The notes beneath the pieces are model-generated. The model was not told the origin of the DNA. It did no database searches and worked only from the letters and a program-made list of their open reading frames with translations. Made by a program: the position numbers and the translations under genes. 64,000 nt of DNA from Marsupella aquatica. Lineage: Eukaryota > Plantae > Marchantiophyta. Where the stretch lies: contig OZ316898.1 in NCBI GenBank assembly GCA_973895155.1, positions 3,596,480 to 3,660,479 on the forward strand. The letters are read 5' to 3'. Positions 4,014 to 42,838 of this stretch are shown here, piece by piece; position 1 is the stretch's first letter; every line of letters begins with the position of its first letter.

Positions 4014-7000
4014 ATGGCTTCGTCTGTGAAAGAAACTGGTCGCTCTAGTGCTCTAGTGAAGTCAGAGAAGATCATGGCATGGCGGTCACAAATTGAAGAA
4101 TCGTCATCCTTGAAAATCGAGGGGCCCCTGAACACGAAGGAGTGGGACGATTTGATGTTTCTTTTGAGACTTGACGATTTGATGTTTAAAAGACAACTCC
4201 CCGTCCACGCCAGCATCCGTGGGGCTTTGGATTTCGCTCACATTTTCGAGGCCCTAGTCGAAGGACGTATTTCTCAGTTGACTTCACTCACCATACGCTC
4301 TGGTGGATACCCTCGAAGCACGGCTCAGAAATTGGATGCATTGTTGAAGGGTGGGTGCTTGAGAAATTTACGACATCTCAGTGTAGGTGGCGCGGTCTTT
4401 GCTGTAGTGGAGTGGACAGTTTTGACAAACGCAATCAAATCCGGGCTACTGCCAGAACTTCGATCGTAGACACTCATCGACTTCCCGTTGGACCAGCGTC
4501 TTACTTTGGCAGGTTTGGTTGAGGAAGCCGGGAATTGGTTCAGCTCTCTTGAAAATCTCGCCATATCTCGAAGTGTCGGCGCCTCAGAGCAAGTTCTTGC
4601 CATGGTAGACGCGATGATGGAACTCCCGCAGTGGGAATCAGCGTTGAAAGTTCTGAATCTCAGGTCAAATGGTCTGGAGGAAACAGCACTTGATGCTCTG
4701 GCAAACTTGGTCGCAGCGGGCCGCCTGCAGCAGCTAGAGGTATTGGACTTGAGTAGAAACCATACTAAAACATTTGGCGCCGCGATTTTCGCAAAGTTCA
4801 TGCGAAACATTCAAGAGGGCCATCTACCTCGACTGAAAACATTTGACTGGAGAGCCAACGAGATAGGAAGTCATGGTGAAGGAGCAAAGGCTGTTGCGAA
4901 AGCGTATTTCGAAAATGGAGCCCTAACAGCAGATATCCGTATCGATTGGGATTGCGTGCGTGACCCATCGTTGGTGGCGAAGGTGAAAGAATACAAGAAG
5001 AGGAATCGGCGACTTGTTGGTTTCAGGAGTCAGCTCAAAGAGGAGTTCAAAGTTCTCGTCCCCCTAAGATCTGCTAAGATTTTTCTTTGTGGATACCCTG
5101 AAGTAGGGAAAACTACATTAAGGAAAGCTTTGGGAAGACGTTTGGGACCCAGGACCAGGTTGATGTGGGAGAGGCGTCCTAAGCGATTCAAGGAGCCACG
5201 GACAAAGGGGATTGAGTTGAGCCGGATTCAAGACAAGAGACACACCACCCTAATTATGTGGGACCTTGCTGGTCAGGAGGAGTTTCATGTTCTTCATGGT
5301 ACATTTTTGGCAAATCTGGGATTTGCAGGTGGGGAAGCCACGACGTTTGTTCTTGTCTTCAAAGTACCATTTGACGCAAATGTGCAAGCCAAACTCATGT
5401 ACTGGCTCAAGTTTGTGGCGTCCAGTTCTGTAAGAAGTGTACAGCGCCAAGTGATGATTGTCTTGAATTGTTTTGATGGTAAACAATGCCTGGAAAGGGA
5501 CAGGAGATATTGTATGAGCTTGATCAAAGACTTTGCTGCAAAGTTTTTTGATATACTTCACATTCACCCGGATCCATTCATAATCGACGTCCGTGTTGCT
5601 GCATTGGTTCAACCTCTGAAACATCATCTCTTCCACCACGCACAAACACTACTGCAAGATGTACAAGTGCCAAAGGCCTGTTTTGAGCTTCTGAAGGACT
5701 TAAAACAGTGGTCAGACGGTGAGAACAAGAACCGCCTTCCCATTTTTAGCTGGAGGGCTTTCGAAGATGATTGGAAATTGAAGCACCTCTTTAAAAGTGA
5801 CCCTTCAAAGAACCTCAAAATTTGCGCTTCATATTTGCATGAGATAGGGGAAATCATCTACTTCGGCGATACGGCATCCAATCACCGAGGGGCTCAGAAC
5901 AAAAGCATTGTGGTTCCTGATCCAGAATGGTTTTGCAAAGAAGTTGTGGGCCAATTGCTGCTCCCAAAAGAGATGCTTGAAGGAGGCAGCTCCATTCGAG
6001 TGAGTGCTGATGGATCGATATCCACAATCAGGTTCCGGGCATTCTTTGAGCATTTGCTTCATGAAGGAACTGCAAGTGATGATGTGGTTTCAATGCTGGA
6101 ACAAGTGGGTTTGTGCTTTCGGAAAGGAACAGAAGAAATTATCATACCAGCTCTTATTCGTGAAGATGATTACACGTCAATTGACTGGGAAGGCCAAGGA
6201 CTCCACGGAGTGATGGGGAGGTGTCTTGCTACTGAAGACACGGGCAGAACTGCTATTCCTGGGACTCTATTTCGGCGGCTTCAAGTGGAGCTCGCCCAAG
6301 ATCCGAAGTTCGGCGGTCGTGGTGACAGCCAATATAGAACAGGCAAGTCCTTTTGTAGTTTCAAGCTTGGGGAGCTCCTGGTTTTAGTGCAGTTCGACGT
6401 GGATCATTCAGACCCCAGTGATGATAGAATTGACATTCTCGTCAAAAGTGTGCTCCGCGGGGATTCCACAGATGTGAGCATGGCAAAGGTTAATGTCATT
6501 TGTGAAATCTTACAAACATTGGAGAGACTTTGTGTTACATGCTGTCCCGGATTGATGTATGATGTGAAGGTCATTCAACCACGGAACGCTCCTCAGGGAA
6601 CCCCAAAAATGACCGAAAGGCAGCTCATGTCCCTGAGAGAAATAAAGGCTCGTCTGGTCAACGGACAAAAATACTTGAGCTGGAAGCTCAACGGTGATCC
6701 AGTGGAGGTAAAGACCCTTCTTTCGGAGAGTGAACTGAAACGTGTTTTGGGAAGCGCTAAAGCAGAGTATGATGAATGTAAACGGGAGGCAGTATCGCTG
6801 GGTCTCGTGACAGAGGATTCTCTGCAAAAGCTAGAAGAATTTGAGCAAGAGAATGCATCTAAGGCAGAAGGTCTTGACGTGGAAGGAGCTACTATCAAAT
6901 ATCGAAGCGATGATGGAGCGGATATAACGAACCGACGGATTCTCCATGAAATGCGCCAACAGCATCGTCTAACACGCCAGGCTGTCCATGGCGATGGTCA

Positions 7001-7379
7001 TCTCACACGGCAGTATATTGAGAAGTCCCAAGAGGAGATCCGGCAAAAACAGAATGTTCTGGTCAGGCATATACAAGCGCAACAAGAGTTCTCAATTGAA
7101 GTGCAAGGTGATAACAGAAAGTATGGAACCGCAGAAGCACCAGTAGATTTGAGAGAGAGAATGATTGCCGAGGGAGTCGTCAAGGATCTGATTGGTGAAG
7201 TTGGTGAAGCCGATTTTAGAAAAAAGATTGGATTGAGGAAGGTGTTGCTCAGAGCTCCAGCCCAGCCGCAGATAAGCAGCTCAGCGCAGGCCCAATCTAC
7301 TGATGCGCAGTCTTGTGTACGGTGGATTTGCGAGAATTGCTACAAGAGCTACGGGGATAGAGCCAGGGCCATCGGATAG
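4014..7379 (+). pseudogene. TORNADO1-like LRR-Roc-COR (ROCO) gene, copy A, with premature stop
   Basis: ATG 4014; in-frame TAG at 4467-4469 (TTG in copy B) then the same frame continues to 7379. LRR motifs (LKVLNLRSNGL, LEVLDLSRN), P-loop GYPEVGKT, RTKGIE, WDLAGQEEF, COR motif LHEIGEIIYF...PDPEWFC, C-terminal GLRKV...WICENC. Lacks 132 codons present in copy C (junction 7100/7101). Confidence 0.85.
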
Positions 7380-8049
7380 AGAGACGAGAGTAGATTGCTA
7401 CTAGCTGAGAATAATTTTAAAGATTTCCTTCCAATCTAGTCCGCGGAGCTCATTTTCATCACACTCATCAGCCACGTAAAGTGATTACGATGTCCACCTT
7501 CACATTCGACGATCATAGAGGACTGGATTTTCGCAGAGCATAAGGCTGCTGCCATTCTTCCACCCGTGGTCAAGTGCAGGACGTCAGTATAAATCCGAAG
7601 AGATTCCTACTGATTAAAACATTTCTGAACCTCCCGGCACTTGGAAGTCCTTCGCGTTCACATGAATTTTTGTGTTCATAAGCCGCTCTTCAGGGTTGAA
7701 GGTTCAGTACGCTCCAGTGCATGGTTTTGCCAGCGCTGCCCTCGTGGAATTCTATAGCAAAAGTTAGATCGATATGATGGTACCGTGCCGGTTGCACATG
7801 GTAGCGTACTGTAGTGAAATTCTCAGGATGAAATCATTTATGGAGTCCAAGGTTGCATTTGACTAGGCGCCGAACTGTACTAGAGGACCACGTCGGGTGA
7901 GAACCTTGAAGACAATCAACGATGAAAGTACATTTCCTTGGCATCTCTGGGAGGTTCTCCCTTGTAACCGATTGCAAAGTATATGCATCTATCACTTTCT
8001 CACCTTCATGCATAGTTGGAAAATCCAGAGATTTGAATCGAAATTGGCC

Positions 8050-8420
8050 ACCCGAATCATGGGTGGTATTTCTTTAAGCCATCTCTCGTCTCCTCCTCGT
8101 TAACTTTCCTGAATTCTCTCCGGTTGTTCTTGGATGAGGCGATGGCGATTCCCATGGGTTGCGGTAATTGAGTGTACAATTTCGGAGCAAATCAGCTCCA
8201 TGTTTCTGAAAAGGTTCAAGACTGTTTACGAGTTCCAACACTTTCCACTTCACTTTCAGGCACCATAACCATATTAGAAGCATTTCGCGCAAGTACACCA
8301 TCACCACTCACATTTGTCTTATCTGATCTGGGGCTGAATTGAGCCCTGCGCAATGGTCATGTCCGGTTCAGAGGCTTCATCATCGTCATTTGCAACTTAG
8401 GGTGGAGCTCGATTCCTCAC
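8050..8420 (-). pseudogene. Remnant of the NAC gene 3' tail carried in the duplicated unit
   Basis: Clear nucleotide similarity to ~44850-45460 (e.g. CTCCATGTTTCTGAAA, GTTCCAACACTTTC, CAGGCACCATAA, TTCAGAGGCTTCAT) with internal deletions. Confidence 0.7.
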
Positions 8421-9889
8421 CAAATAGTTTTGAGTGGTATTTTTCTCTCTAGATTAAGGGTTGGGGTTGCTGATATTCTCATAACCTGGACTAGTTGAGT
8501 AGGGTACCAACCATGGCCGCAAGGGGGTTATGGGATGTCATTCCAAAGGGCTGTGAGTCCTAGCGAATTACAGTCATGGCCATGGATTAATGAGCATAAG
8601 ACTCCAGGGTAATGTTTTGCTCTATTTTGTCATGAAAATTGTGCCTAAGATTGTGCCAAACCGTCCAGTCAGAGAAATATGAAGAAAAAACTACAGGAAG
8701 CAATTAAGTTTCTAAAATACTCGACAATTTGTGGAATGAGGATTGTCCTTAATTAAACTGTCCTTACCTGAGCAGTGCACCCACCTCCTTCCTTGCACGG
8801 CAGTCTGGAGCCTAAGTGCAATAGAGTCAAAGATACATGATGCTCTCTTTTGTGAAAGTTAGGATCGTTTTAAATCTAGATATGTGCTATATATTGATAT
8901 GCTAGTGATAAACTTGAACAAAACATCCTTGCTTAAACATCCTTCAAGCATTCCAAACTTCAACAAGGGCCAAAATTGAAGAAACCATCAGTATTTGATG
9001 ATATCTTGAAATGAACCCATACCAAAATAATATTACAAAACTCCATTCATTTGTTTGACCAGCAACTGGCAAAAACCAAAGCATACGTAAAGGGATGAGG
9101 AATTACACTTACAAAGTGCTCGATACATTTTGAGTATCATTTTCGTTTGCTTGTCGCCACCGCTCGCAAGGATTGACCAAATCGTGCGAGTAGATACCTC
9201 ATGTTAAAGATGAGATCCCGGTCATACTTCTCGCCTTTCTTTGACACTGCCTTTAGCTTGCGAGATCAACATTCATCCAGCTTCTGTCCTGCAGGCATCT
9301 TTTCTCCGTGACGGACTTTCTGACCTTGCCATTTATACTCGATGCTTCTTCTATCCATTTTGAATCTAGAGATTGATCATCTTGTGGCGAGACAAGTGAG
9401 AAAGCCATCGCACAGACCTCACCCTGAAAGAGGAAGCTCAATAACACCAAACGTTAAATCTACGTCAGCCGTACAACCAGAACATAAACCAAGACACATA
9501 TAATTCGAATTACTTGTTTTCTATATCATAAATATAGTGTATTAGTTATGGACCCCCATGAGAGGTCCCTTGCAAATTCCTTGCCACGAGGTTGAGCCAC
9601 ATCAGCACAACCAGCCACAAACAAGAAATAACATATTTTTGACAGTAACAAAAACACGCATTCATGGATGTGGCAAAAACAACATAATTTTTGGGGCGCC
9701 ATGCCATAAATATTAAGCGTAAAAAAAACCAGAATACAAAGGAAGAGATGTCATTTAATAAAATAAAATTACCATTATGATGTTTGTCAATGATATATCA
9801 GTATTTTATATCAAAATACTTGTATTTTTTTAATTGTTTGCAAGTTTGAAAAAACCAATTGTCTGATAGAAATGTACATAGTTAGAACC

Positions 9890-12601: not shown

Positions 12602-14225
12602 CGTTAGAATGACTTAGGTCGTAACGATAACTCTTCTTCCCCGCCGTTTCTCTTGTTTGCTTCTGATCTACGGATCTGGAATAAGGAACTTTCGGTGAGA
12701 GGCCGATCTTGAATCACAAACCAGAACACTGATAGGCATCGCACCCGTGGTCCTATATATACATTGACTCATCACATTCAACTTGTCGTCAGACTTGGCC
12801 TTGGATGACCACTCGGATGAATTCTCTCTATGGGCTGATCGATTTGATCAGCAAGCGCACAGAGTTCACGAGCACACCAAGGTTCTCGGACAAAACATAG
12901 AGCTCATAGTAAACTATGTCTGGGACGGGACACGGAACTTCACAGGCACACATTATCTCCAAAGCAGGCAAAATTTTGCTTCGTTGCTATGCGCAGTCTC
13001 CGAATTGAATCGAAATACAAGAGTTCGTTTCAGAAAACCACTGGCGATGTTTCAAAGAAGGGATGATCAAATTGAATGAACTGGAGTGATCTGTATTAAC
13101 GGCAGTGCTGCAACGCACGTATTCATGACGACGGTACGTTGGAAATCGTTACTGTGATGAAATCGACCAACTGTCACGAAAATTGAAGAGTTTGAGAACC
13201 TAGAATCTATTTTAGTAAGCGCGAAGACAAACCTACACGAACGACCTTTCGAACTAGAGTGCAGCCTCAATATCGTGATATTGCAGCTGCAGGGCGAATG
13301 ACATTGGCAACGACAATGCGTCCGTGCATAGCACCCGCAGTGGATGAATAACTAGTCTTGATGGTGTCGAACAAATGCAGTGAAGAACTAGCCCAGAGGA
13401 GTATCAAAATAAATCGAACAACACTGTCAGCTAAAGTTCAGTTCAGCTTCGATCAATCAGTCCCCCAGCGCCAAATGGTGCGGACTACTCTCACAAAACG
13501 TTGGACTCGAAGGTGAGCAAACTTGTGTGCAACCGCTACATACTCCTTGAACCCAACCCTCAAAAACAGGAGGTCCCACACAACGAGATCACACCACAAG
13601 AGTTCCAACAGGACAGATTATCAAATACCTCGTTGCCCGTGGGGATTGTTTCGAGAATTCGACTCTCTTGCCTCTCAATTCGCCCACGATACAACCAACA
13701 GGTCGATTCAAAATTTTTGCTGCAAATCGCTTACTACAGGCTCCTTGAATTCTGCTTGGAGCGAATGTGAGCAGCACTGCGGGAGAAGCCGCCAGAGAGT
13801 CTACAACAATCCGAAGCTGTGACGAAGGAGGTGCTCCCATCAACGCGGAGTTCGGCACCCCCCGTCGGCTCTGCGAAGGCCAAGCTGGAGCAGATCCTTC
13901 TTTACTGACTGTTTCCTTCCACTCCTTTTGCTCTATCTTCTTTTGTGAGGATGGCTTTACAACAATGTTGAGGTACTTGCAACATTTTTCACCAAAGCAA
14001 ATTGGTGAGGGTGTCTTTACAAGCTTGTTGGGGCACTTTGACTTTCTTTCACCAACGCAAACTGGACTGCCATTTCAAATACTAAAGATAGTGTACCAGG
14101 GTGGAGCTTTTTGGAATCCTTTTATTTCCCCCCGTCTTGTAAAGCTAACTGTAGCAAGCGGTGCCAGAATTATGTACTAAGCTACAAGTTGGGGACCCAC
14201 TCCTCTGATAGTCAAATAGTTCTTT

Positions 14226-14668
14226 GGGTACAGCCCCAGTTTGGACTTGTCTGACAAATAAGGGGTCTGGATTCTACAAATGACATTTGTCACACCCGGT
14301 TGTCCCGGCCCGGCCGGCCCACACCCCACCCCGATCTGGCCCAACCCCAACCCAGCCCTGGCCTGGCCCGACCCGCCCACACCCCGCCCCAACCCTGGCA
14401 GGCCCCGACCTGTCCCGGCCCCACCCCGGCCTGGCCCATACCCCCTGACCCCGACCCTACCCCGACCTTACCCTACCCCGCCCGGCCCCAACCTCGAACC
14501 GGAGGGCCAGCTCGCTAAACCGGGGGAGTCTGGGACCGGGCCGGGAGGAGGTCGGGAAAGTTTGGGACCGGGCCGGGAGAGGGTCGGGAAAGTCTGGGGC
14601 CAGCCGGGGAATATAGGTGACAAATGACATGACAACTTGTCCATCAGTTCAAACCGGGGGTAGAGCCC
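14226..14668. mobile_element. GC-rich MITE-like element with GGG...CCC termini
   Basis: Left GGGTACAGCCCCAGTTTGGAC...ATGACATTTGTCAC and right GTGACAAATGACAT...GTTCAAACCGGGGGTAGAGCCC are imperfect inverted repeats; C-rich then G-rich interior; absent at the homologous sites near 16560 and 36720. TSD unclear. Confidence 0.65.
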
Positions 14669-17162
14669 TTCTAGCTATGATAGGAGAAAATCTTATGAAA
14701 GACTAGTGGGTTCACTTTTATTGAAATAGACTCAAAGGCTCAGTAATGGACCAAGCAACCAGTCAGATGAAAAGACCTCCAAGAGAGGTGGTCTAAAAAT
14801 TGGGACAAAAATGTGCTACACAAAAACAAGATATGGGCCCTACTCCAGTCCATATAGGATTGGCAACACTATAGAAATAAACTGGCCCCACATTTTGTAA
14901 GGGAACTGCAAGTGTATCTTCCTACTGGATAGCCCTCTTGCATCTTAATTAGAGACCAGAAACAAGCTGAAACTGCCCCGAACTTCTTATAAAGCCACCC
15001 TGAAGTTATGATGGACCAATCCCTGCACCTCCCATGTACTCCCCATAGTCAAGGTCACCAACCCATGGACTCCAAGTGGCTGCTCTTGGTACAACACTTC
15101 ACTTTTGAGAAGGTCCATGGAAAGACGTATAGACTCCCTAAACTCAAGTGATCAGTCACTTTACACGGAAACGAAAAAGCCGCAAGTCAGATGCTTTTGA
15201 AAGGACACTTCACTCTATGGCAAGACTTCCCCCAAGTAATTTCTCCATACAGCCCATCAACTATAAACTGCTGTTTTGGCACACCTCAGTTGTGCACTTA
15301 TGTGGATCTCTTTTCAAGCTCAAAGTTTTCCGACACGGTTTTTTGTTTGTTTGTTTGTTTTTTGGGGAACTTGGCAATTTATTAAAATGACCACTGAGTT
15401 GATGACCAGTGGGGCACAAAACAATACAAGCCAAGGGCCAGGACACACCACAACCGACGCCAAAACACCAACACCGCAACAGTCCTCAAAGCCAAAGTCT
15501 TCAGACAGGAGGGCCAAGAGGGGGCAAAAACCAAAACCGAAACCACATGAAGAAAGGCATAGCACAACTTCCCAATGGTAAGGGTGACCCCAACACTGGC
15601 AAGAACGAGGACATGGTTTATGTTGTCCAATCTATTATTACCTTTCAAAGTCCGAAAGCTGGGGGGGTTTCACTTCCACAAAAATGGCACATCACGTGCA
15701 ACAAAGGATAGGGTCATTTTATTAGTTCAAAGGGAAGACTTAAAAAAATTTGCAAAAGAACAATAGGGTCTTTTAAATCCAATTTTGAGACTTATAAGAA
15801 TAATAGGGTTCTTCTAACCAAATTTTTGGAATATTCTAAGAATATTCTAACTTTATTAGGGTTGAAAAAAATATTAAAATTTCTTATATTTGAGGGGGTC
15901 CGAGGCCTAAAAACGTCGCAGGTGATGGGGAGACCTCCATACAATGAGACCCCCAAGATCTAATGCTCAAGCAATTATTCAAAAATCGTGGCACCTGCTG
16001 GCAATTTACGTATGTAAGGATTGGCCCAGACATCAGTTCAAAATTAAAATTGGCAAATCCACGTATGAGAATGCTCTCAATGATATGACCTTCAACTATG
16101 GGTCTTGGGCTGCAATATGGGAAATCCATGAGGACATCTTACAGATACCACCTGTTCCCCCCTAGACCCCCATGAATGTTTTTACTTTACAGGAGTAGAA
16201 GTTGTACTGATAGTTTTGTCTGTCACGGACCCACTCTTGGGTGCCCCGCTGGCACTTGTCCACTGGCCGGTCTTTCAAGAATTTATGCTGCCCCTTCTGC
16301 GGTGGTTGAATTTCTTGTTTGGCTTGGTTTCTTGGGGCCTACTTCTCTCCTGGTCCCGGCTTCCCCGGTCCTTTAGGCTTTTGGACTGGACCTCTGGTTC
16401 CCCAGGGTGCCAACCCCCTCTTGTGGGCCACCCATGTTGTATGCTGGCTTTTTGAATGGAATTCAATTGGTTTTTTTTAGGCAAAAAACAAGTGGTGCTT
16501 GAATGATCTGCTATGAGACAAGCTGAAGACCCACTCCACCCCAAAGTGATATAGTTCTTTGGCTAGAGTACTTCCGGATCTCATAGAAAGAGAAGATCTG
16601 TTGAAGGACTCTTGGGTACACTTTTCATGTGAATGACTCAAAATAGGAATGGACCAGATGAAGAGACCTCGAAGAGAGGTGGACTAAATATTGGGACAAA
16701 CCTTGCTCCCCAACAGCAAAATTTGGGCCTTTCTCCAATCCATGCACAAACGTTACTAGAAAGAAACTGGCCCAAATGTTCGTAAAGTGAACTGCAACTA
16801 TATTCTCCAATGGATAACCCTATCACATCTTAGAGACCAGAAAAAATTTTAAACTGCCCCCTATAAAGCCACCCTGAAGTCTGATGGGCCAATCCCTGCC
16901 CATCCCATTTACTCCCTAATTAAAGTCAAGTCACCAACCCATGGACTCCAAATGGTTGGCTGCTTTTGGAACTACATTCACTTTTGAGAAGACACATGGA
17001 AAGACATATGGACTCCCTAAAGTCAAGTCATCAGTCACTTTACACGGGAAAGAAAAAGTGACAAGAGCCTTTTGGAAGGACACTTCACTTTATTGAACTA
17101 TGCCCCCAAGTAGTTTGTCCAGACGGCCAATCAACAATGAACTGCTAGTTTTAGGAAAACAT

Positions 17163-17472
17163 TGTTTGTCTTGAAACCAAAACCTAACCCATCCAACAGA
17201 GGATAGACAATCAACTTAGGAACATGCGCCTCTGTAGGGCAACCACAAGGGGGTCACACCCAGGGATCGGACAGGGACCTAGACCAAGAGGGAGAGAGGT
17301 TTGAACCAGAAGCACAAGCCATACCAGCCAGGGGCTGAGAAAAAACCAAGATTCTCACCACGACACCCACACACACACACACATAATATATGATCTTCAC
17401 AAACCTGGGCAGACTTGGGACCTCTCAGTTCTAGGCTAATCCACTGGCCAACTGACCATAGCCAATTGGTTG
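17163..17472 (-). mobile_element. tRNA-derived SINE, copy 2
   Basis: Minus-strand head ACCAATTGGCTATGGTCAGTTGGCCAGTGG...GAACTGAGAGGTCCCAAG, (GT)n tract, degenerate ~15-bp TSD; absent from the 15260-15310 copy of the flank. Confidence 0.7.
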
Positions 17473-17711
17473 GTTTCTGGTAGACTTAAATCATGCATTA
17501 TTTTCTTTGGATCTTTTTTCAAGCTCAAATGTTTTCAGCATGTTTTATGTTGTCCATTCTGTTACCTTACAAAGTTTGAAAGTTTTCTAAGATCATTTGC
17601 TTCATTTCCAATGTGAAAATGGTCAAATATATTAAGCCAACTACCTGTCCAATGGAAAATTCTCTTTCATGAAAGACACCCTGCATAGTTTGGGCATGAG
17701 CAATGAATAAC

Positions 17712-18210
17712 ATTTTTTCGTTTTCTTTTTTTTTGAAATGGGAACTACACCCTAAAAACTTTATTCCGAGAAGACAAAGCAAATACATAGAGGACTGCCT
17801 GAGAGAAGGAGGCAACCAGAAAAAGGAAACAATTTAGGGGGCTAATGGAAGGAGCACACCCAGAGAAAAAGAAATATATGGATCCCACCCAACCAGATTG
17901 CTAAAAGGATATGTGACAGAAAAGGTGGGAAGTGGGGAACCCAAGAGAAGGGACAAACATCAAACAAACCTACTAGACTACAGAACCAGGATGCAACCAG
18001 GAGCAGCAAACAATGCATGGACCATCTTGGTATCTGACTGGGGATCCGTCGATCACCATCCACCCGGGCATCCACCTCTGACCAAAGAGCCACGGACCAC
18101 TAGCCACCTGCTTCCCCCAAAATCCTTTATTTAATGCCGAAAAGATCCGCCAATTCTTTCCAGGATACCATAACCAGGATACTGTTGATCAACAGCAAAT
18201 AAGTAACTCC
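17712..18210 (-). mobile_element. 5'-truncated LINE-like 3' fragment
   Basis: Absent at the paralogous site near 37873 (CAATGAATAAC|CTTTTGGGAAGG); minus-strand A-rich tail at 17713-17734; Trp-rich degenerate translation. No clear TSD. Confidence 0.5.
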
Positions 18211-18233
18211 CTTTTGGGAAGGAAGCTTCACTT

Positions 18234-30845: not shown

Positions 30846-31401
30846 AAAGATATGATCATCCAAATAAAAAGCTTAAACAATGTTGACTTCCGTGTACGTA
30901 GAGTGGAGAGTACCAGACTGGTCCGTTCCAGGAAATGGGGAGCAGGAAATTGGGAGCCGACCTTTATTAGCGGAGATGGCAACTTGGAAATGGGGAACAT
31001 CGGTTTGCTACGATGTCTGAAGTTGCGAATTGCTGGACATCTCAGAGAGAATAACAAGTGACAGAAAGCATTTTTCGAGAGGGTGGCGATGGGGACTGAA
31101 GACGAGGACAGTGCAATGCGTTTCTGGTCCATGTTTTGTAAGCTGTGGGTCATGTATGTGCCCTGGGGCAGCTGAGGCTTGTAGTGATCGTCCATCTACC
31201 ATTGCCGCTGAGAATTTGCAGCCTGCTGTTCCAGATAATCAAGTGCAGGTTGTGCCAGTTTTCATAAATAACGTTGTGGCGACTGGAGGTTCGACAATCT
31301 AGCTTCTGGAAGGGCTGGATTGTATCTTAATGCCCAGCTTCCGATAGCTTGTTTTGTTGTTATATTTCGGTCATCTGGGTTGGAAATTGGTTACTTCTTC
31401 C

Positions 31402-34400
31402 ATGGATTTTTCTGTGGAAGAAACTGGCGTGTCAAGCGCTCTGGGGAAGTCACGGATCATGGCATGGCGGTCTCAGATTGAAGAATTCTCATCCTTGGAA
31501 ATCGAGGGGCCCCTGAACCTGGAGGAGTGGGACGGTTTGATGTTTCTTTTGAGTGATGACGATAAGGTGGATGAAAGACAACTCGCCATCTACGACCGCC
31601 GTTCACTCTCCTTACCCTATGGTTCAGGGTTTACACGTCGACGCGCGGCTCAGAACTTGGATGCACTGTGGAAGAGTGGGTGCTTGAGAAATTTACGACA
31701 TCTCAGTGTCGGTAAGCATGCCTTTGCTAAACTGGAGTGGATGGAGTGGACAGTTTTCACAAACGCAATCAAATCCGGGCTACTCCCCAATCTTCGCTCG
31801 TTGGAACTCTTTTCATTTAGTGTTTCCATGGCAAAAGATGGATCTTTGGAATTCGTTTACGTTTCGTTGAGGCAGTGTCTCAACTTGACAGATTTGATAG
31901 AGGGAGCCGGGAATTGGTTCAGCTCTCTTGAAAATATCACCATACGTGCCGGCACCTCAGAGCAAGTTCGTGCCATGGTAGACGCGATACTGAAACTCCC
32001 TAAGTGGGAATCAGCGTTGAAATTTCTAATTCTCCCATCAAATAATCTAGACGAAACAGTACTTGATGCTCTGGCAAACTTGGTCGCATCGGGCCGCCTG
32101 CAGCAGCTAGAGGAACTGGACTTGAGTAGAAACATACTAATAACATCAGGCGCCGCCGTGTTCGCAAGGTTCATAGACACCATTCAAGAGGGCCGTCTAC
32201 CGCGACTGAAAACATTTGACTGGACAGCCAACGGGATAGGACGCGATGGTGAAGGAGCAGAGGCTGTTGCGAAAGCTTATTTCGAACATGAAGACCTAAC
32301 AGCCGAAATTTATATCGAATGGGATCGTGTGCGTGACCCGTCGTTGGTGACGAAGGTCCAATGGTATAAGGAAAGGAATCGGCGACTTGTTGCTTTAAGG
32401 AGTCGGCTCGAAGAGGAGTTCAAAGTTCTTGTCCCCCTCAGCTCTGCAAAGATTTTCCTTTGTGGATTCCCTGAAGTAGGAAAAACTACATTAAGGAAAG
32501 CTTTGGGACGACAGTTGGGACTCAGGACCAGGTTCATGCCGGAGAGGCATCTCATGCGATTAACGCAGCCACGGACGAAGGGGATTGAGTTGAGCCGGAT
32601 ACAAGACAAGAAACACACCACGCTAATTCTGTGGGACCTTGCTGGTCAGGAAGAGTTTCATGTTCTTCATGGTACATTTTTGGCAAATTTGGGACTGGCA
32701 GGTGGGGAAGCCACTACATTTGTTCTTGTCTTCAAAGTACCATTTGAGGCAAATGTGCAAGCCAAACTCATGTATTGGCTCAAGTTTGTGGCGACCAGTT
32801 CTGTAAGAAGTGTACAGCGCCAAGTGATGATTGTCTTGAATTGTTTTGATGGTAAACAATGCCTGGAAAGGGACAGGAGATATTGTATTGGCTTGATCAA
32901 AGACTTTGCTGCAAAGTTTTTTGATATACTTCACATTCACCCGGATCCATTCATAATCGACGTCCGTGTTGCTGCATTGGTTCAACCTCTGAAACATCAT
33001 CTCTTCCACCACGCACAAACACTATTGCAAGATGTACAAGTGCCAAAGGCCTGTTTTGAGCTTCTCAAGGACTTGAAACAGTGGTCACACGGTGACAACA
33101 AGAACCACTTTCCCATTTTTAGCTGGAGGGCTTTTGAAGATGATTGGAAATTGAAGCACAGCGCTAAAGGTGACCCACGCAAGAACCTCAAAATTTGCGC
33201 TTCATATTTGCATGAGATAGGGGAAATCATCTATTTCGACGATACGGCATCCTCTCACCCGGGGTCTGGGAACAAAAGCATTGTTTGTCCTGATCCAGAA
33301 TGGTTTTGCAAAGAAGTTGTGGGGCAGTTGCTGCTCCCAAAAGATATGCTTGAAGGAGGCAGCTCTATTCAAGTGAGTGCTGATGGATCGATCTCCCTAA
33401 TCAGGTTCCGATCGTTCTTTGAGCATTTGCTTCCCCAAGGAACTGCAAGTGATGATGTGGTTTCAATGCTGGAACAAGTGGGTTTGTGCTTTCGGAAAGG
33501 AACAGAAGAAATTATCATACCAGCTCTTATTCGTGAAGATGATTACACGTCAATTGACTGGGAAGGCCAAGGACTCCACGGAGTGATGGGGAGGTCTCTT
33601 GCTACTGAAGACACGGGCAGAACTGCTATTCCTGGGACTCTATTTCGGCGGCTACAAGTGGAGCTCGCCCAAGATCCGAATTTCGGCGGTCGTGGTGACA
33701 GCCAATATAGAGCAGGGAAGTCCTTTTGTAGTTTCAAGCGTGGGGAGCTCCTGGTTTTAGTGCAGTTCGACGTGGATCATTCAGACCCCAGTGATGATAG
33801 AATTGACATTCTCGTCAAAAGTCTGCTCCGTGGGGATTCCACAGATGTGAGCGCAACAAAGGTTCATGCCATTTGTGAAATCATACAAACCTTGGAGAGA
33901 CTTTGTGTGACATGCTGTCCCGGATTGATGTATGACGTAAAGGTCATTCAACCATGGAATGCTTCTCAGAAAACCCCAAAGATGACCGAAAGGCAGCTCA
34001 TGTCCCTGAGAGAAATAAAGGCTCTTCTGGTCAAGGGAGAAAGATGCTCAAGCTGGAACCTCAACGGTAACCAAGTGGAGCTAAAGAGCCTTCTTTCGGA
34101 GAGTGAACTGAAAGGGGTTTTGGGAAGCGCTAAAGCAGAGTATGATGAATGTAAACGGGAGGCAGTATCGCTGGGTCTCGTGACAGAGGATTCTCTGCAA
34201 AAGCTAGAAGAATTTGAGCAAGAGAATGGCGCCAAGGCGGAAGGACTTGACGTGGAAGGAGCTACTACCAAGTGGCGAAGCAATCTTGGAGTGGATATAA
34301 CGAACCGACGGGTTCTCGATGAAACGCGCGAGGAAATCCGCCAGCAGCATCATCTAACACGCGAGGCTGTCCACGAAGATGGTCACCTCACACGGCAGCA

Positions 34401-35159
34401 TATTGAGAAGTCCCAAGAGGAGATCCGGCAGAAACATAAAGTTATGGTTATGCATATACAAGCGCAACAACAGTTTTCAATTGAAGAGAGAGAGAGAGAA
34501 GCGTCCCCAGGTACATATTCTTGTCCAGGAAGCAAGGCAAATCGAACGTCTGGATAACTTTGAAACAGGCTTTCAACGAATCCTTCGAATTGCACCTCCT
34601 ATGCGAGGCTCATTTCGATGATGGATTTTTGCACGAAGTGGAAGGCCAAGAAGGTATCCAGTTGACAAGACCCAAGTGGCTGAGCACCATCTCACCTTGG
34701 CTTCGCAGGTCCTTACTGGTATCTGTAATGGTAGGTAAATTAGCAGGCAATATCTACCTACCGGGTGTTTTCAATTTCATTCCAAATTTGGATTATCTGC
34801 AAAATAATGGGGAAGGGTCGTCAAAAGCAGTAGATACTGCAGCCAGCATGATGTTGGAGGAAGATGAAGGGGTGAATCAAGTGCAAGGTGATAACAGAAA
34901 GTATGGAACCGCAGGAGCACCAGTAGATTTGAGAGAGAGAATGATTGCCGAGGGAGTTGTCAAGGATCTGATTGGTGAAGTTGGTGAAGCTGCTTTCAAA
35001 AGAAAGATTGGATTGAGGAAGGTGTTGCTCAGAGCTTCAGCTCAGCCGCAGATAGGCAGCTCAACGCGGGCCCAATCATCTGAACCCCAGTCTTGTGTAA
35101 GGTGGATTTGCGAGAATTGCTACAAGAGCTACCGGGATAGAGCCAGGGCCATCGGATAG
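31402..35159 (+). pseudogene. TORNADO1-like LRR-Roc-COR gene, copy B, frameshifted at a (GA)7 tract
   Basis: ATG 31402; LRRs, GFPEVGKT, WDLAGQEEF and COR open to 34557; one extra GA at 34486-34499 relative to copy C shifts the frame, and the homologous C-terminus continues in ORF 34521-35159. Confidence 0.85.
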
Positions 35160-37322
35160 AGAGACGGGAGAGAGACGAGAGAGATTGCTCAGTGTAATAA
35201 ATGTTTGCGAGAGGGGGATTGGAAACAAAAGGGCGCAGCAGTGGTCTTGATCCTGTTTTGATTGTTTATCGTACACCATTGGTCCCCTTGTTTACGTAGT
35301 ACATAATTAGATTTCGATGTTTCCTGAATTGGGCAGCTTGGGGACCGGGCCAACAGCCCGACAACCCCGGGCCCAAGACCCGTCGGGACCAGGTGACATT
35401 TGTCAAGGCAAAAAAACCAGGGGAATCCTGGGTTCTGTCGATACACCTGCAATATATCTTCTCCGATACTTGACTTCTGCGGTGACCTGATTGCATTGCC
35501 GCTCAGCGACAGATTCTCCGCGAAACGAAGCAGGATTGGGGGTGAGAGGCTATCTTTGCTACAGAAGCTAGGATTAATGAAATTGGAAGTGTTGGGTGAT
35601 CCTTTTCAATCTAGTTCATACTGTTTCTCTATTTTTCTTACGTCTAGAACCAGGCCCAATGATCTAGAGATTTAAAGTGTTTTCAGACAACTGACCGACT
35701 CTCTATTCGTGCCCAAGATTCCTTGGATGGTCTAAATAGAGGAATATCTTTGTTTGATCTGGAATGGAAAAATCTCTGACGGATAAAAGTCCAATAAGTA
35801 CAAACGCAGGGCATCCCTCAACGTGTGAACTCAATAATATCTCCCAGAACTGAATTACTATCTCGAGATCTTCGTCGATTCCAATGACTCAGGTTGTCGA
35901 TCAGTGAGTAGAAGCCCCGCCACTTCCTGTGCAGATCAATTGTGTGGAGGGTAGTGTTGATTCAAAGTGCCAGCTGAGGTGACCAATGTCGGGCTTTCAC
36001 TCCACTCTTCACGACAAGAACTTTCTCTCTTAGTTTTGGTATGTTTTCTCCTTCATTTCCGTGACCCAGTTGTAACTACCTCTCATCCGCTTATCGCGAA
36101 GAGCTACAATGGTTTAGAAACTCCTCACTGCTAGCTGAGAATTTAGAGATTGGGTCCCAATCTAGTCTTGGACAGAATATCAAATACCCCATTGCCCGTT
36201 GGGATTGTTTCCAGAATTCGACTCTCTTGCCTCCCAATTCGCCAACGATACGACCAACAGGTCGATCCCAATATGTGCTGCAAACCAGTTTTTTTGGTGC
36301 AAATCCGATCATCTTTGTTTTGCTACATACTGCTTGAATTGGAGCGAATGTGAGCAGCACTGAAGGAGCCGCCAGCGACTCTACCACAATCCGAAGCTAC
36401 GACCAAGCAGGTGCTCCCATCCACAGACAACGCGGAGTTTGACACCCCAGTCGGCTCTCAGACGGACACACATCCTTCGTTGCTGACTGCTTCCTTCCAT
36501 TCTTTTGCTCTATCATCTTTTCTGAATCTGAGAGTGGCTTTTCAAGAAGCTTGGGGCACTTGTGACTTTTTTCACCGCCCATTTTAGATACTTAAGATAG
36601 TGAGCTTAAAACGTTTCGGAATCCTTTTATGGCCCCCACCTCTTGGAACAAGTGGTGCTTGAATAATTTGCTATGAGACAAGCTGAAGACCCACTCCACC
36701 CCAAAGGAATATAGTTCTTTGGCTAGAGCACTTCTAGATCTCATAGAAAGAGAAGATCTGCTGAACGACTTGTGGGTACACTTGTCATGTGAATGACTCA
36801 AAATAGGAATGGACGGGATGAAGAGACCTCCAAGAGAGGTGGTCTAAATATTGGGACAAAAACGTGCTCCGCAACAGCAAAATTTGGGCTTCCTCCAATC
36901 CATGCACGAACGTCCAACCGTATAGAAAGAAACTGGCCCCAATGTTTGTAAAGTGAACTGCAACTACTGTATATCTCTCTAATGGATAGCCCTATCACAT
37001 CGTAGAGACCAGAACAAATTTGAAACTGCCCCCTATAAAGCCACCCTGAAGCTCTGACGGGCCAATCCCTGCCCACCCCATTTACTCCCTATAGTCAAGT
37101 CACTAACCCATGGACTCCAAGTGGCTGCTTTTGGAACGGCATTTCACTTTTGAGAAGACACATGGAAAGACATATGGACTCCTCAAGCCATCAGTCACTT
37201 TACACGGGAAAGAAAAAGTGACAAGAGGCTTTTGAAAGGACACTTCACTTTATTGAACTACGCCCCCAAGTAGTTTGTCCAGACGGCCAATCAACAATGA
37301 ACTGCTAGTTTCAGGTAAACTT

Positions 37323-37631
37323 TTGTTTGCCTTGAAACCAAAACCTAACCCATCCAACAGAGGATAGACAATAAACTAAACTTTGGAACATGCGTCTTTG
37401 TAGGGCAGCCACAAGGGGTCACACCCAGGGATCCGACGGGGACCCAGACCAAGAGGGAGAGAGGGTTGAACCAGAGCCCCAAGCCATGCCAACCAGGGGC
37501 TGAGAAGAAACCAAGATTCACACCACACACACACACACACACATATTTTTACAACCCTAGGCAAACTTGGGAAATCAAAATCTCAGTTCTAGACTAATCT
37601 CCTGGCCAAATGGCCATAGCCAGTTGGTTTG
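37323..37631 (-). mobile_element. tRNA-derived SINE, copy 4 (duplicate of copy 2)
   Basis: Same insertion site as 17163-17472 in the paralogous block; TSD GTTTCAGGTAAACTT (37308-37322) / GTTTTGGTAAACTT (37632-37645). Confidence 0.75.
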
Positions 37632-38969
37632 GTTTTGGTAAACTTAAGTCATGCATTACTTTCTTTGGATTGTTTTTCAAGCTCAAATTTTTTCAGCATG
37701 TTTAATGTTGTCCATTCTGTTACCTTACAAAGTTTGAAAGTTTTCTAAGATCATTTGCTTCATTTCCAATGAATGTGAAAATGGTCAAGTATTGTCAGCC
37801 AACCGCCTATCCAATGGAAATTTTTCTTTCATGAAAGACACCCTGCATAGTTTGGGCATGAGCAATGAATAACCTTTTGGGAAGGAAGCTTCACTTTATA
37901 AAGTAAGCCAAAACTCTTTCTCGTGTGCATCTACATCGTTCCCCTTTACTGGTTCCACACTTACGACCTAGCGTCAATCTCAGATCACTCTTCCATTTAA
38001 GGCTCCATGCCAAAAAGTACTTTATGCATTGCCTATAATTAACCTAGCACATTCATATACTCTAACATGTTGACCTCAATATTGTGGGGCCGCGTTGCTC
38101 CAGTTCGTGCAATGTGAATTGAAATGTGTCAGGTCTAAAGAACTGGAGCAAAAGAATGCATTGATTATTTTCAGACCCGACACATTTTGGCTCAGACCAC
38201 CTATTTTTTCTGATCAGTGATATGTGTATGTTTTTTTGTCAAAAACTTACATCCACTCTTGAGGTGGTCTAGAAAAACCAATGCATTGAATTTTTTGTAG
38301 CCCCGACACATTTTTGCTCATACATTTTAGATTATTTTACACATTTTGGCTCATTTTAACTGCCTCGCACATTTTAACTTTTGACTAATGAACTGGCCAT
38401 GACAGTGCGCGGCCCCCACCGTCTTGTACAGGCCACATAATAATAAAGTTGGTAGACTCGGTTTTCCCTTCACGGAAAGTTGAAATCGCGTCAAAACAAT
38501 GTTGACTTCCAGGAAATGGGGAGCAGGAAATTGGGAGCCCGACCTTTCGCGGAGATGGCAACTTGGAAATGGTGAACATCGGTTTGCTACGATGTTTGAA
38601 GTTGCAAATTGCTGGACATCGGAGAGAATAACTATTGACACAATGCAATTTTCGAGAGGGTGGCGATGCGCACGGAAGACGAGAAATCTGCGATGCGGTT
38701 CTGGTCCATGTTTTGTAAGCTACGGGTCATGCATGTGCCATGTAGCAGCTGAGGCTTGGAGTGATCGTCCTTTTACCACCGCTGAAAATTTTCAGCTTGC
38801 TGTTTCTGAAAATCATGTGCAGGTTGTGCCAGTGTTCATCAATTACTTTGTGGAGAATTGAGGTTCGACAATCTAGCTTCTGGAAGGGCTGGATTGTATC
38901 TTAGCAAGGATGCCCAGCTTCCGAGAGCTTGTTTTCGGTCATCCGGTTTGGAGATTGGTTACTTCTCCC

Positions 38970-41900
38970 ATGGATTCGTCTGTGGAAGAAACTGGTGTGT
39001 CAAGTGCTCTGGTGAAGTCAGAGAAGATCATGGAATGGCGGTCTCAAATTGAAGAATCCTCATCCTTGAAAATCCAGGGACCCTTGAATCCGAAGGAGTG
39101 GGACGACTTGATGTTCCTTTTGAGAAATGACGATGTCTCTGGAATTGAGCACCTGACTTTGTCTATCGAGGACTTGGGTGGGAGGCCCTGGTCGAAATTG
39201 GGAGGACCTAGAGTAGGCGATACTGGAGTGGGAACTATTCTTGGAACCGTTCGATTCCCAGCGCTCCAGACTCTCGAAATTGACGTGAATCATCGCAATT
39301 TGCCTTTTTATTCTGACAACAAGCCAGTACTCGACGTCGATCGCGAATCGATGCTTGAATTCGACCTGGACTTAGATTTCAGAAAGCGTTTCCTCCCGGC
39401 GCCTTTAAATTGGACATCGGGAGTGAATCCATAGGAGCGGCTTTCAGAACAGGCCAGTTCGCAAACCTTCGTAGACTACGCCTCGGCATCTGGATCGGAA
39501 CAGACCAGTTTAGTAATCGTCGTCCAAGACAAGTCGCCGCCCACGCCAGCATCTGCGAGGCTTTCGATTTCAATCATATATTTGCGGCCCTGGTCGAAGG
39601 ACGTATTTCTCAGTTGACTTCCGTCTCCCTACACTCTACTGCATACCATCGAAGCGTGGCTCAGAACTTGGATGCATTGTTGAAGAGTGGGTGCTTGAGA
39701 AGTTTACGACAACTCAGTATAGGAGGCGAGATCTTTGCCGAACTGGAGTGGACAGTTTTGTCAAACGCAATAAAATCTGGGCGACTGCCAAATCTAAGAG
39801 CGTTCGAACTTGTCCACCTTTCGTTGAAGCAGCATCTCAACTTGGTAGATTTGGTTGAGGGAGCCGGGAATTGGTTCAGCTCGCTTAAAAGTCTCACCAT
39901 ATCTAATTGTCAGCATACCTCAGAGCAAATCTGTGCCATGGTAGACGCGATAATGAAACTCCCTACGTGGGAATCAGCGTTGAAAGTTCTGAATCTCAGG
40001 TCAAATGGTCTGGAGGAAACAGCACTTGATGCTCTGGCAAACTTGGTCGCATCGGGCCGCCTGCAGCAGCTAGAGGAATTGGACTTGAGTAAAAACCCGC
40101 AAATAAGATCTGGCGCCGTTTTGGCAAGGTTGATGGAGAGCATTCAAAGGGGCCGTCTACCTCGACTGACAAAGTTGGACTGGAGAGCCACTGGGAGAGG
40201 CAGCGATGATGAAGGAGCAGAGGCAGTGGCGCAAGCTTATTTTGAGAACAGGTCCCTCACAGCGGCCATCGACATCGACTGGGATCGCGTGCGTGACCAG
40301 TCGTTGGAGGCAAAGGTCGAAAAGTACAAGGATAGGAATGTGCGACTAGTTGCTCTAACGAATGAGGTCGAAAGGGAGGAGGACCTCAAAGTTCTCGTAC
40401 CCTTGTCTTCTGCGAAGGTTTTTCTTTGTGGGTACCCCGAAGTAGGAAAAACTACATTAAGAAAGAGTCTCGGAAAACGTTGTGGCTTAAGCACCCGGTT
40501 AACGTGGGAGACGCGTCCAAAGCTATTCAAGGAGCCACGGACAAAGGGGATTGAATTGAGCCGCATTACAGACACGAACAACACTACGCTAATTCTGTGG
40601 GACCTTGCTGGTCATGAAGAATTCCATGTACTTCACGGTACATTTTTGGCAGATTTGGGATTTGCAGGGGGCAAAGCCACGACATTTGTTCTTGTCTTCA
40701 AAGCACCGCTTGAGGCAAATGTGCAAGCAAAATTCATGTACTGGCTTAAGTTTGTAGCGTCAAGTTCCATAAAACATGTAAAACGCCATGTGGTGATTGT
40801 CTTGAATTGTTTTCGAGGTGAAAAATGCAGTGAGAGTGACAGAAGATACTGGATGAGTTTAATTGAAATATTTGCTCAAAAGTTTACAGATGTACTTTAC
40901 ATTCACCCGGTCCCATTTATAATTGATGTTCGTGCTACTTCAAGGGTCCAACGATTAAAATATTATCTCTTTAACCAGGCAGGAGCACTTTTGCAAGATA
41001 TACAGGTCCCAGGAGCTTGCTTTGAGCTTCTTGAGCGCTTGAAACTGTGGTCGAACGCTGAGGACAAGAGCCACTTTCCCATTTTTACGTGGGAGGCTTT
41101 CGAGAAGGGATGGAAGTTCACGTACAAGGGAGACAAATATTTCCCTCCAAAAGATCTGAGGATTTGGGCTTCATACTTGCATGAGATAGGTGAAATCATC
41201 TACTTTGAGGAGAAAGGACCCAATCAACCCGGATCTGGAAACAAGTGCATTGTGGTTCCTGATCCAGAATGGTTTTGCAAACAAGTTGTGGGCCAATTGT
41301 TGCTCCCGAAAGAGATGCTAGAAGGAGGCAGCTCTATTCAGGTCAGTGCTGATGGATCGATCTCCCTAATCAGGTTCCAAGCGTTCTTTCAGCATTTGCT
41401 TCCAGAAGGAACTGCAAGTGATGATGTTGTTTCAATGCTGGAACAAGTCGGTTTGTGCTTTCGGAAAGGAACAGAGGAAATTATCATACCAGCTCTTATT
41501 CGTGAAGATGATTACACGTCATTTGACTGGGAAGGCCAAGGACTCCACGGAGTGATGGGGAGGTCTCTTGCTACTGAAGACACGGACAGAACTGCCATTC
41601 CTGGGACTCTCTTCCGCCGGCTACAGGTGCAGCTCGCCCAAGATGCGAATTTCGGCGGTCGAACCCCAAAAATGACCGAAAGGCACCTCATGCCACTGAG
41701 GGAAATAAAGGCTCTTCTGGTCAAGGGACAAAAATACTCAAGCTGGAAGCTCACCGGTGACCCAGTGGAGCTAAAGACCCTTCTTTCGGAGAGTGAACTG
41801 CACGGGGTTTTGGGAAGCGCTCAAGGACAGTTTGATGAATGTAAACGGGAGGCAGTATCGCTGGGGCTCTTGACAGAGGATTCTCTGCAAAAGCTAGAAG

Positions 41901-42838
41901 AATTTGAGCAAGAGAATGGTGCCAAGGCGGAAGGTCTTGACGTGGAAGGAGCTACTACCAAATACCGAAGCGATGATGGAGTGGATATAACGAACCGACG
42001 GATTCTCCATGAAATGCGCCAACAGCATCGTCTAACACGCCAGGTTGTCCATGACGATGGTCATCTCACACGGCAGTATATTGAGAAGTCCCAAGAGGAG
42101 ATCCGGCAAAAACAGAATGTTCTGGTCAGGCATATACAAGCGCAACAAGAGTTCTCAATTGAAGAGAGAGAGAGAAGTGTACCCAGGTACATATACTTGT
42201 CCAGAAAGCAAGGCAAATCGAACGTCTGGATAACTTTGAAACAGGCTTTCAACGAATCCTTCGAATTGCACCTCCTCTGCGAGGCTCATTTCAATGATGG
42301 ATTTTTGCACGAAGTTGAAGGCCAAGAAGGTATCCAGTTGACAAGACCCAAGTGGCTGAGCAATATCTCACCTTGGCTTCGCAGGTCCTTACTGGTAGCA
42401 ATAATGGTAGCTAAAACTACAGGCAATATCTACCTACCGGGTGTTTTCAATTTCATTCCAGATTTGAATTTTCTGCAGAATAATGCGGAGGAGTCGTCAA
42501 AAGCAGTGGATAGTGCAGCCACCATGATATTGGAGGAAAATGAAGCCGGGGTGAACCAACTGCAAGGTGATAACAGAAAGTATGGAACCGCAGGAGCACC
42601 AGTAGATTTGAGAGAGCGAATGATTGCCGAGGGAGTCATCAAGGATCTGATTCGTGAAATCGGTGAAGCTGCTTTTAAAAAAAAGATTGGATTGAGGAAG
42701 GTGTTGCTCAGAGCAGCAGCTCGGCCTCATATAGGCAGCTCACCGCAGCCCCAATCTTCTGACCCCCAGTCTTGTGTCAGGTGGATTTGCGAGAGTTGCT
42801 ACAATAGCTACGGGGATGGAGCCAGGGCCATCGGATAG
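38970..42838 (+). pseudogene. TORNADO1-like LRR-Roc-COR gene, copy C, with N-terminal frameshift and COR deletion
   Basis: ATG 38970; frame change between 39358 and 39432; long ORF to 42838 with GYPEVGKT, WDLAGHEEF, COR, coiled coil, LHLLCEAH...LHEV and WICESC; lacks 93 codons (copy A 6320-6598) at ~41661. Confidence 0.85.

Follow-up and report, generated by a model that had tools for sequence, protein, structure and literature searches.

The 64,000-nucleotide stretch of Marsupella aquatica DNA analyzed here (assembly GCA_973895155.1, contig OZ316898.1, positions 3,596,480 to 3,660,479 of the forward strand; hereafter, the window) contains three co-oriented paralogous units on its plus strand, each carrying a gene of the LRR-Roc-COR (ROCO) type, in which leucine-rich repeats (LRRs), a Roc GTPase domain, and a COR domain follow one another. 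Self-BLASTN and a three-way MAFFT alignment delimited the units as A (about 3491 to 7397), B (30886 to 35173), and C (38507 to 42856). One long open frame of 963 to 1142 codons was found in each unit, and all three copies start in the context CCATGG and stop in the context GGATAG. The original prediction for this DNA had described a tandem array of TORNADO1 (TRN1)-like GTPases extending from 4014 to 42838, and these limits proved exact, the former being the ATG of copy A and the latter the stop of copy C.

The Roc domain was detected by Pfam in all three long open reading frames (ORFs) at 30.6 to 35.9 bits (cut-off, 27), and COR-A matches of 22.9 to 25.7 bits (cut-off, 35.3; E values of 1e-5 to 9e-5) were obtained in all three copies. 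A COR domain directly C-terminal of Roc was accepted as present, P0003, an intact relative from Calypogeia fissa, a leafy liverwort, and the Marchantia paleacea protein P0010 both aligning through COR-A and COR-B of potato TRN1. The predicted conservation of the Roc motifs held for the P-loop, which was intact in A, B, and C as G(Y/F)PEVGKTTL, and for WDLAG, which was present in all, but it did not extend to the remaining positions: switch II read DLAGQ in A and B and DLAGH in C, and at the G4 position, where [NT]KxD or THxD is expected of a ROCO protein, A and B had NCFD, C had NCFR, and intact P0003 had NCFG. With a Roc domain that includes a P-loop (GxxxxGKT) and DxxG and is followed by COR, the three copies are assigned to the ROCO family by their predicted domains. 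The sole solved structure matched by sequence was 4wnr, a Roc-COR fragment of Methanosarcina barkeri Roco2 (E value of 0.003, Roc region). Prokaryotic Roco proteins such as this one share the LRR-Roc-COR order with the window family; in contrast, their sequences are very distant and they are without the plant C-terminal module described below. Pfam searches with C-terminal and N-terminal pieces gave only noise.

The window copies aligned colinearly to P0003 (1390 aa) with no intron-sized gaps. P0003 and a second intact C. fissa relative, P0005 (1422 aa), are single-exon genes whose loci translate straight to the protein, and on this comparison the window genes are intronless, as had been proposed for the three tandem paralogues, and about 1390 codons long in the intact state. 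In the C. fissa genes P0007 and P0008, two introns were found in the 3' part; the LRR region formed one exon in these genes, as it did in P0003 and P0005.

Each copy was disrupted in its own way. Because the frames were broken, their pieces were searched separately and never read through a stop or frameshift, and codon columns with a stop or gap were skipped. Copy A (4014 to 7379, with its ATG at 4014 and its stop at 7377 to 7379) contained a premature TAG in the LRR region at 4467 to 4469, where copy B has TTG and copy C has TTC, and an in-frame deletion of 396 bp (132 codons; junction, 7098/7099) that began at an (AG)n tract and removed the equivalents of P0003 residues 1170 to 1298, the core of the TRN1-type C-terminal module. 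This module was therefore missing from copy A, whereas copies B and C retained it. In copy B (31402 to 35159), a 1051-codon LRR-Roc-COR frame began with the ATG at 31402 and ended at 34557, and the C-terminal module lay in another frame at 34485 to 35159. The cause was a +2 frameshift just before the module, in a coding (AG)7 tract (34483 to 34501; repeat at about 34485 to 34498) that is (AG)6 in copy C (42163 to 42174). The LRR region of copy B had also lost 61 bp and gained two insertions, one of 1 bp and one of 45 bp. In copy C (38970 to 42838), the first frame started with the ATG at 38970 and stopped at 39432 to 39434, and the main frame ran from 39359 to the stop at 42836 to 42838 and included the C-terminal module; the frame change fell between 39359 and 39434, and an in-frame deletion of 279 bp (93 codons; junction, 41661/41662) was located in COR-B. 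The frame change lay within an N-terminal/LRR segment (39135 to 39525) that was kept in copy C and P0003, which share the conserved motif DVSGIEHL, and of which about 380 bp were missing from A and B. The large indels originally noted in the LRR N termini were thus found. The (AG)n tract, which codes for an EEKER-like stretch and is different in intact P0003, was both the frameshift site in B and the 5' deletion breakpoint in A (7098), and it looks like a fragile site.

If these lesions were errors of sequencing or assembly, all three genes would be intact. The frameshift in B is compatible with such an origin, as it amounts to a single additional AG unit in a microsatellite, where errors and slippage are typical. 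The lesions in the other copies are of a different kind: copy A combines a clean substitution, TTG to TAG, with the 396-bp deletion, copy C has the 279-bp deletion and a frame change in nonrepetitive sequence, and no gene model of at least 630 aa from the window was present in the protein collection. We therefore consider an artefactual origin of the whole set improbable; most likely, the three window genes are dead.

The similarity among the units extended beyond the genes, from about 520 bp 5' of the ATG to several kilobases 3', with the repeats in the same order in each unit. The 5' flank of copy A (3491 to 4013, plus strand) was coduplicated with the gene and matched 30886 to 31401 and 38507 to 38969 at 85 to 88%; the 3' flank of unit B (36170 to 37878, plus strand) recurred downstream of copy A at 13611 to 17716; and further self-BLASTN matches linked 7398 to 8418 with 43796 to 45463 and 35216 to 36088 with 42856 to 43776. 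Since flanks were repeated alongside coding sequence, whole units of about 7.6 kb, which is the spacing from B to C, were evidently duplicated in tandem. The spacing from A to B was 27 kb, and copia and gypsy fragments sat solely in this interval: a degenerate Ty1/copia fragment (23484 to 25868, minus strand) with gag, Pol_BBD, gag_pre-integrs, rve, and SH3_retrovirus matches spread over several broken ORFs, and a retrotransposon gag zinc-knuckle and aspartic-protease fragment (18702 to 19553, minus strand). In the B-C spacer, no transposable-element ORF was found.

Because the genes are intronless, they might also be read as gene fragments captured by a transposon, either in a Pack-type element or as retrocopies. 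An inverted repeat of 86% identity with arms of about 530 bp (1642 to 2149 and 2959 to 3490) lies at the edge of the array, its right arm ending exactly where unit A begins (3491), and could represent a transposon or a foldback element. Capture is nevertheless the least probable of the explanations considered. Besides the gene, the duplicated units take in about 520 bp on the 5' side and kilobases on the 3' side, arranged alike in each; the LRR-Roc-COR-C-terminal architecture is represented in full in the copies; intact paralogues, likewise intronless, occur singly at other loci; and neither unit B nor unit C is bracketed by terminal repeats.

The three copies were not uniformly related along their length. 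In the 5' part, A, B, and C were about equally distant from each other; over Roc and COR-A, A and B were 90.5% identical and C was about 82% identical to both, with a synonymous divergence (dS) between A and C of about 0.5. On the 3' side of its own deletion junction, copy C was 90 to 94% identical to A and B, with dS values of 0.10 to 0.18, and the step in A/B-C similarity from 82% to 94% fell at position 41661, which is that junction. Copy C is therefore a recombinant with a diverged 5' part and an A/B-like 3' part, and such mosaic similarity indicates unequal crossing-over or gene conversion between the paralogues.

The only close relatives of the window copies in the databases were C. fissa proteins (assembly GCA_965154635.1), at 47 to 63% identity. 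When the window was compared by BLASTN with seven C. fissa loci, nothing near-identical was found, the best match being 82.6%. A HMMER scan of 1.84 billion representatives with the Roc-COR-C-terminal part of P0003 returned 332 proteins at E values of 1e-3 or less. Word searches undercounted the family: with a potato TRN1 query, angiosperm TRN1 crowded the results and no bryophyte orthologues appeared, and a profile word search built from 20 members returned only 15 proteins, with several of its own query rows not among them.

P0003 and M. paleacea P0010 aligned to potato TRN1 (P0014) with 23% identity across some 860 residues (E values of 3e-42 and 4e-39, respectively), and the homology spanned Roc, COR-A, and COR-B and continued into the C-terminal module, for which the consensus E..VPR...RLH.LCE...H.V..Q.G...P.L...PG.G..P...K.GL.RV...W.C was common to both clades. 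The window family and TRN1 thus share the order of N-terminal RNI-like LRRs, Roc, COR-A/COR-B, coiled coil, and C-terminal module, and they differ at G4, which is THYD in TRN1 and NCF[DGR] in the window family. At the level of predicted architecture, with N-terminal LRRs, Roc, COR, and a conserved plant C-terminal module, the genes are truly TRN1-like.

Phylogenetic trees of the Roc-COR region (FastTree with 110 rows and quick IQ-TREE LG+G4 searches with 51 and 57 rows) gave a different answer with respect to descent. The window copies fell in a clade of 15 loci (SH-aLRT support, 100) comprising P0001 to P0009, P0318, P0137, P0146, and copies A, B, and C, in which the database members were all from C. 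fissa. This clade was sister (94) to the single Marchantia gene Mp3g18490/Mapa_009678, and both belonged to a liverwort-only clade (97 to 98) that also contained Riccia P0136, Mp5g10940, Mp5g11750, Mp2g10020, Mp3g24120, and a second Calypogeia group of seven (P0139, P0280, P0140, P0143, P0147, P0149, and P0150). Angiosperm TRN1 was placed in another clade (98), together with sequences from Ceratodon, Adiantum, and Chara, Mp1g27080, Mapa_007432, Mapa_010739, a Riccia sequence, and C. fissa P0319. The trees indicate that the window genes are not TRN1 orthologues and that they belong to a liverwort-only sister clade of the TRN1-containing clade. The TRN1-like label was consequently correct for the architecture, including the C-terminal module, but not for the lineage that expanded, as the TRN1 clade has its own liverwort members P0319 and Mp1g27080.

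The liverwort clade included 15 named C. fissa models, P0146 (assigned by locus), three probable members, and copies A, B, and C, as opposed to five Marchantia polymorpha genes; these counts, taken from clustered protein sets and annotated models, are lower bounds and include fragments. With 15 loci in one Calypogeia clade and 7 in a second, the single or low copy number that would mark a TRN1 gene was not found, and the claim of a lineage-expanded family was well founded. The turnover by birth and death that had been proposed was likewise seen, in clusters, pseudogenes, and recombination. In C. fissa, P0004, P0005, and a partial copy (538 aa; probably P0146) lay within about 90 kb on contig CBCUJL010000003.1; P0001, P0009, P0139, and P0280 were on one 5.4-Mb contig; and P0140 and P0143 were together on another. 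P0001 (1017 aa; L001:8800-13150) and P0002 (990 aa; L002:8850-13290), the nearest relatives of the window copies, have loci that change frame three times relative to P0003, and their models were probably built on pseudogenes in which predicted introns span the breaks or separate gene models lie on either side of them. A further partial ROCO copy (L005:17217-19353), extending from COR to the C-terminal module in two frames, was located 3 kb downstream of intact P0005, the start of which is overlapped by a 440-aa LRR-like model. In some paralogues (P0004 at L004:10001-16712, P0006, and P0009), the P-loop occurred near residue 900 to 920 instead of 430 to 510; the N-terminal/LRR region of P0003 aligned twice in L004, indicating that the LRR domain was duplicated there.

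The C-terminal end of the protein varied within the family. An AlphaFold2 model of P0003 residues 1020 to 1390 (the last 371; mean predicted local distance difference test score [pLDDT], 78) showed a helix of 60 residues and, after it, an alpha/beta module, and the module alone (residues 1170 to 1390) was modeled at a pLDDT of 74. Foldseek searches of the PDB gave nothing below an E value of 0.36 for the longer model or 0.63 for the shorter one, VIA-align matched only the long helix (Z scores up to 6.8, to generic coiled coils) with a best Z score of 2.4 for the module alone, and the ESM Atlas gave no usable match for the TRN1-type module. As modeled, the module matches no known fold, which is not proof of a new one. 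PF27087, which is listed for TRN1 in precomputed Pfam tables, is listed also for a fish NLRP3-like protein and is probably an RNI-type LRR family rather than the TRN1 C-terminal module.

The TRN1-type module was undetected in P0006 and P0009. In the intact proteins P0007 (L006:13385-14047) and P0008 (L007:13471-14133), it was replaced by a DUF676/SERAC1-like alpha/beta-hydrolase with the nucleophile elbow GHCLG, an assignment based on Abhydrolase_6 (E value of 4e-4), DUF676 (E values of 0.06 to 0.08), and a match to DUF676 clusters in the Atlas (score, 0.97). The same hydrolase ended liverwort ROCO proteins of the TRN1-side clade, namely, Riccia P0189 and P0226, as well as P0258, P0238, and P0157 (GHSLG). 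Lipase-type domains are found in fungal NLR-like proteins. Bryophyte NLRs carry alpha/beta-hydrolase domains, and two of these gave cell death resembling the hypersensitive response in Nicotiana benthamiana (Chia et al. 2024, PMC11218826). The hydrolase-ended liverwort ROCO proteins recall both the bryophyte hydrolase NLRs and the fungal proteins in domain type.

Selection was assessed by Nei-Gojobori pairwise counts of nonsynonymous and synonymous changes (dN/dS) on codon columns, a procedure with low power for so few sequences. Among A, B, and C, dN/dS was 0.44 to 0.59 overall, 0.63 to 0.80 for the N terminus and LRRs (bootstrap range, 0.46 to 1.11), and 0.31 to 0.40 for Roc-COR (bootstrap range, 0.22 to 0.62). 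For the intact pair P0007/P0008 (dS of 0.07), the values were 0.94 for the N terminus and LRRs (confidence interval, 0.63 to 1.48), 0.40 for COR, and 0.67 overall. The ratio in the LRR part was thus about twice that in Roc-COR and never clearly above 1. The LRR excess that would be expected of a variable sensor was therefore seen (0.63 to 0.94, against 0.3 to 0.4), but values did not exceed 1, and replacements between P0007 and P0008 were not enriched at the x positions of LxxLxLxxN (6 of 50, compared with 32 of 269 elsewhere in the domain; Fisher's exact test, P = 1). The data show an excess of replacements in the LRRs without a sign of focused positive selection, at low power. Furthermore, the Roc-COR ratios of 0.3 to 0.4 indicate that purifying selection acted on the lineages during most of the time over which they diverged, so that the window copies descend from working genes that died lately.

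Two accounts of this pattern were weighed. Under the first, the family would be an intracellular immune-receptor repertoire diversifying under pathogen pressure, with the LRRs as sensor, Roc-COR in place of NB-ARC as switch, and the C-terminal domain as executioner. Its lineage-specific expansion, tandem clusters, pseudogenes, recombination between paralogues, and LRR indels speak for this account, as do the twofold difference in dN/dS between the LRRs and Roc-COR and a modular output that is either the TRN1-type module or a DUF676-type hydrolase; the hydrolase domains of the bryophyte NLRs mentioned above, two of which cause cell death, add to the resemblance. There is also a precedent in brown algae, in which LRR-ROCO families have been put forward as candidate immune receptors (Teng et al. 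2024, PMC11378527). Those families resemble the present one in their LRR-Roc-COR architecture, lineage-specific expansion, and variable LRR content. In brown algae, each exon encodes a single LRR motif, the exons are shuffled and undergo alternative splicing, and diversifying selection has been reported (PMC11378527); the liverwort LRR region, in contrast, is intronless, varies through indels and recombination between paralogues, and shows no dN/dS above 1; moreover, the brown-algal families were not the nearest relatives in the HMMER scan. The resemblance to plant NLR clusters covers tandem arrays, pseudogenes, unequal recombination, indels of LRR units, and swappable terminal domains, one of which, in liverwort members, is an alpha/beta-hydrolase, a domain type also seen in the bryophyte hydrolase NLRs (PMC11218826). 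The differences are that a Ras-like Roc GTPase with COR, rather than a STAND NB-ARC ATPase, serves as the switch and that the LRRs are N-terminal rather than C-terminal. Against an immune repertoire, dN/dS exceeded 1 in no region, P0007/P0008 replacements were evenly spread with the LRR beta-strand x positions unenriched (so that the focus of selection on solvent-exposed LRR positions typical of NLRs was not found, in low-power pairwise counts of few sequences), the family is small beside NLR repertoires, and the TRN1-type module resembles no known executioner fold.

Under the second account, a TRN1-like signaling gene with a developmental or housekeeping role was multiplied by whole-genome and tandem duplication in a region rich in transposable elements, and the redundant duplicates passed through relaxed constraint on the LRRs to death, with no receptor diversification. 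This account is in line with the three broken copies in the window and the apparently broken P0001 and P0002, with LRR ratios that are near 1, uniform, and not focused on ligand-facing positions, and with a whole-genome duplication that C. fissa underwent recently (preprint 10.1101/2025.04.01.646537). In addition, TRN1 itself is a developmental gene according to PMC11378527, which cites Cnops et al. 2006. It fits less well with other findings, as a single whole-genome duplication yields 2 copies and not 15 per Marchantia gene, Marchantia keeps five diverged members with no such duplication invoked, several paralogues are intact with Roc-COR ratios of 0.3 to 0.4, and the C-terminal domain swap is retained in the intact pair P0007/P0008. 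The analogy with immune receptors fits the genomic behavior of the family and the hydrolase swap, but it was ranked below relaxed decay: we regard the immune repertoire as possible, though doubtful, and neutral decay as a serious candidate whose chances nevertheless fall somewhat short of even.

The interpretation that best covers the locus as a whole, to which we assign a probability of roughly 0.8, is that the tandem array in the window consists of three intronless paralogues, inactivated recently, from a liverwort-specific LRR-Roc-COR family evolving by birth and death. The array grew by duplication of units of about 7.6 kb that included the gene and its flanks, and retrotransposon insertions later lengthened the A-B spacer; the copies exchanged sequence, and each acquired its own disabling lesions. 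By homology with other ROCO proteins, intact members may act as intracellular switches in which the RNI-like LRRs bind a partner or ligand and gate the Roc GTPase within a COR dimer, with output through the coiled coil and the C-terminal module common with TRN1 or, in some paralogues, through the DUF676-type hydrolase. Calypogeia hosts intracellular fungi. Sensing of non-self, from pathogens or symbionts, is the most attractive specific role for the LRRs by analogy, albeit a tentative one. More speculative, and rather unlikely, is the analogy extended to an intracellular Roc-COR surveillance system that would operate beside NLRs in liverworts, with LRR sensors and interchangeable C-terminal outputs, and that would be expanding and dying in Calypogeia clusters.

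Several points weigh against this interpretation of the array. The COR-A matches are below the Pfam gathering threshold, and in the window copies Pfam found no COR-B. At G4, the motif departs from the usual form (NCFD, NCFG, or NCFR), and specificity for GTP is assumed. The only frame-breaking lesion of copy B is a 2-bp difference in a dinucleotide repeat, which could be an assembly error or a polymorphism, so that this copy may remain functional. Placement of the root between the liverwort and TRN1 clades depends on three distant ROCO sequences and quick searches, and fast evolution could have pulled a true TRN1 co-orthologue out of its clade.

Two other features were recorded downstream of the array. 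About 3 kb beyond copy C, a 207-codon ORF (45961 to 46584, minus strand) encodes a complete NAC/NAM domain (Pfam E value of 3.7e-47); no gene for its exact product was on record. From 60001 to 64000, the GC content was 0.52 to 0.54, compared with a window mean of about 0.45, and the minus-strand ORFs there (61239 to 62304) had no Pfam match.

Plants have been stated to have one or two ROCO genes (PMC11378527), and in the literature searched, only TRN1 has been studied among them; searches with the Marchantia gene identifiers and with ROCO in combination with Marchantia or liverwort found no paper on the liverwort members. The present analysis indicates that liverworts keep a separate multigene LRR-Roc-COR clade, with five genes in Marchantia polymorpha and more than 20 loci in Calypogeia, that turns over by tandem duplication, recombination, and pseudogenization. 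The three window genes are of value as evidence on how this family evolves. The LRR deletions, losses of the C-terminal module, and hydrolase swap make up a natural series of domain variants, and Marchantia genetics and the intact C. fissa genes such as P0003 would offer a tractable means of studying how plant ROCO proteins and the C-terminal module of TRN1 function. The family may also be regarded as a candidate for intracellular sensing outside the NLRs in bryophytes.

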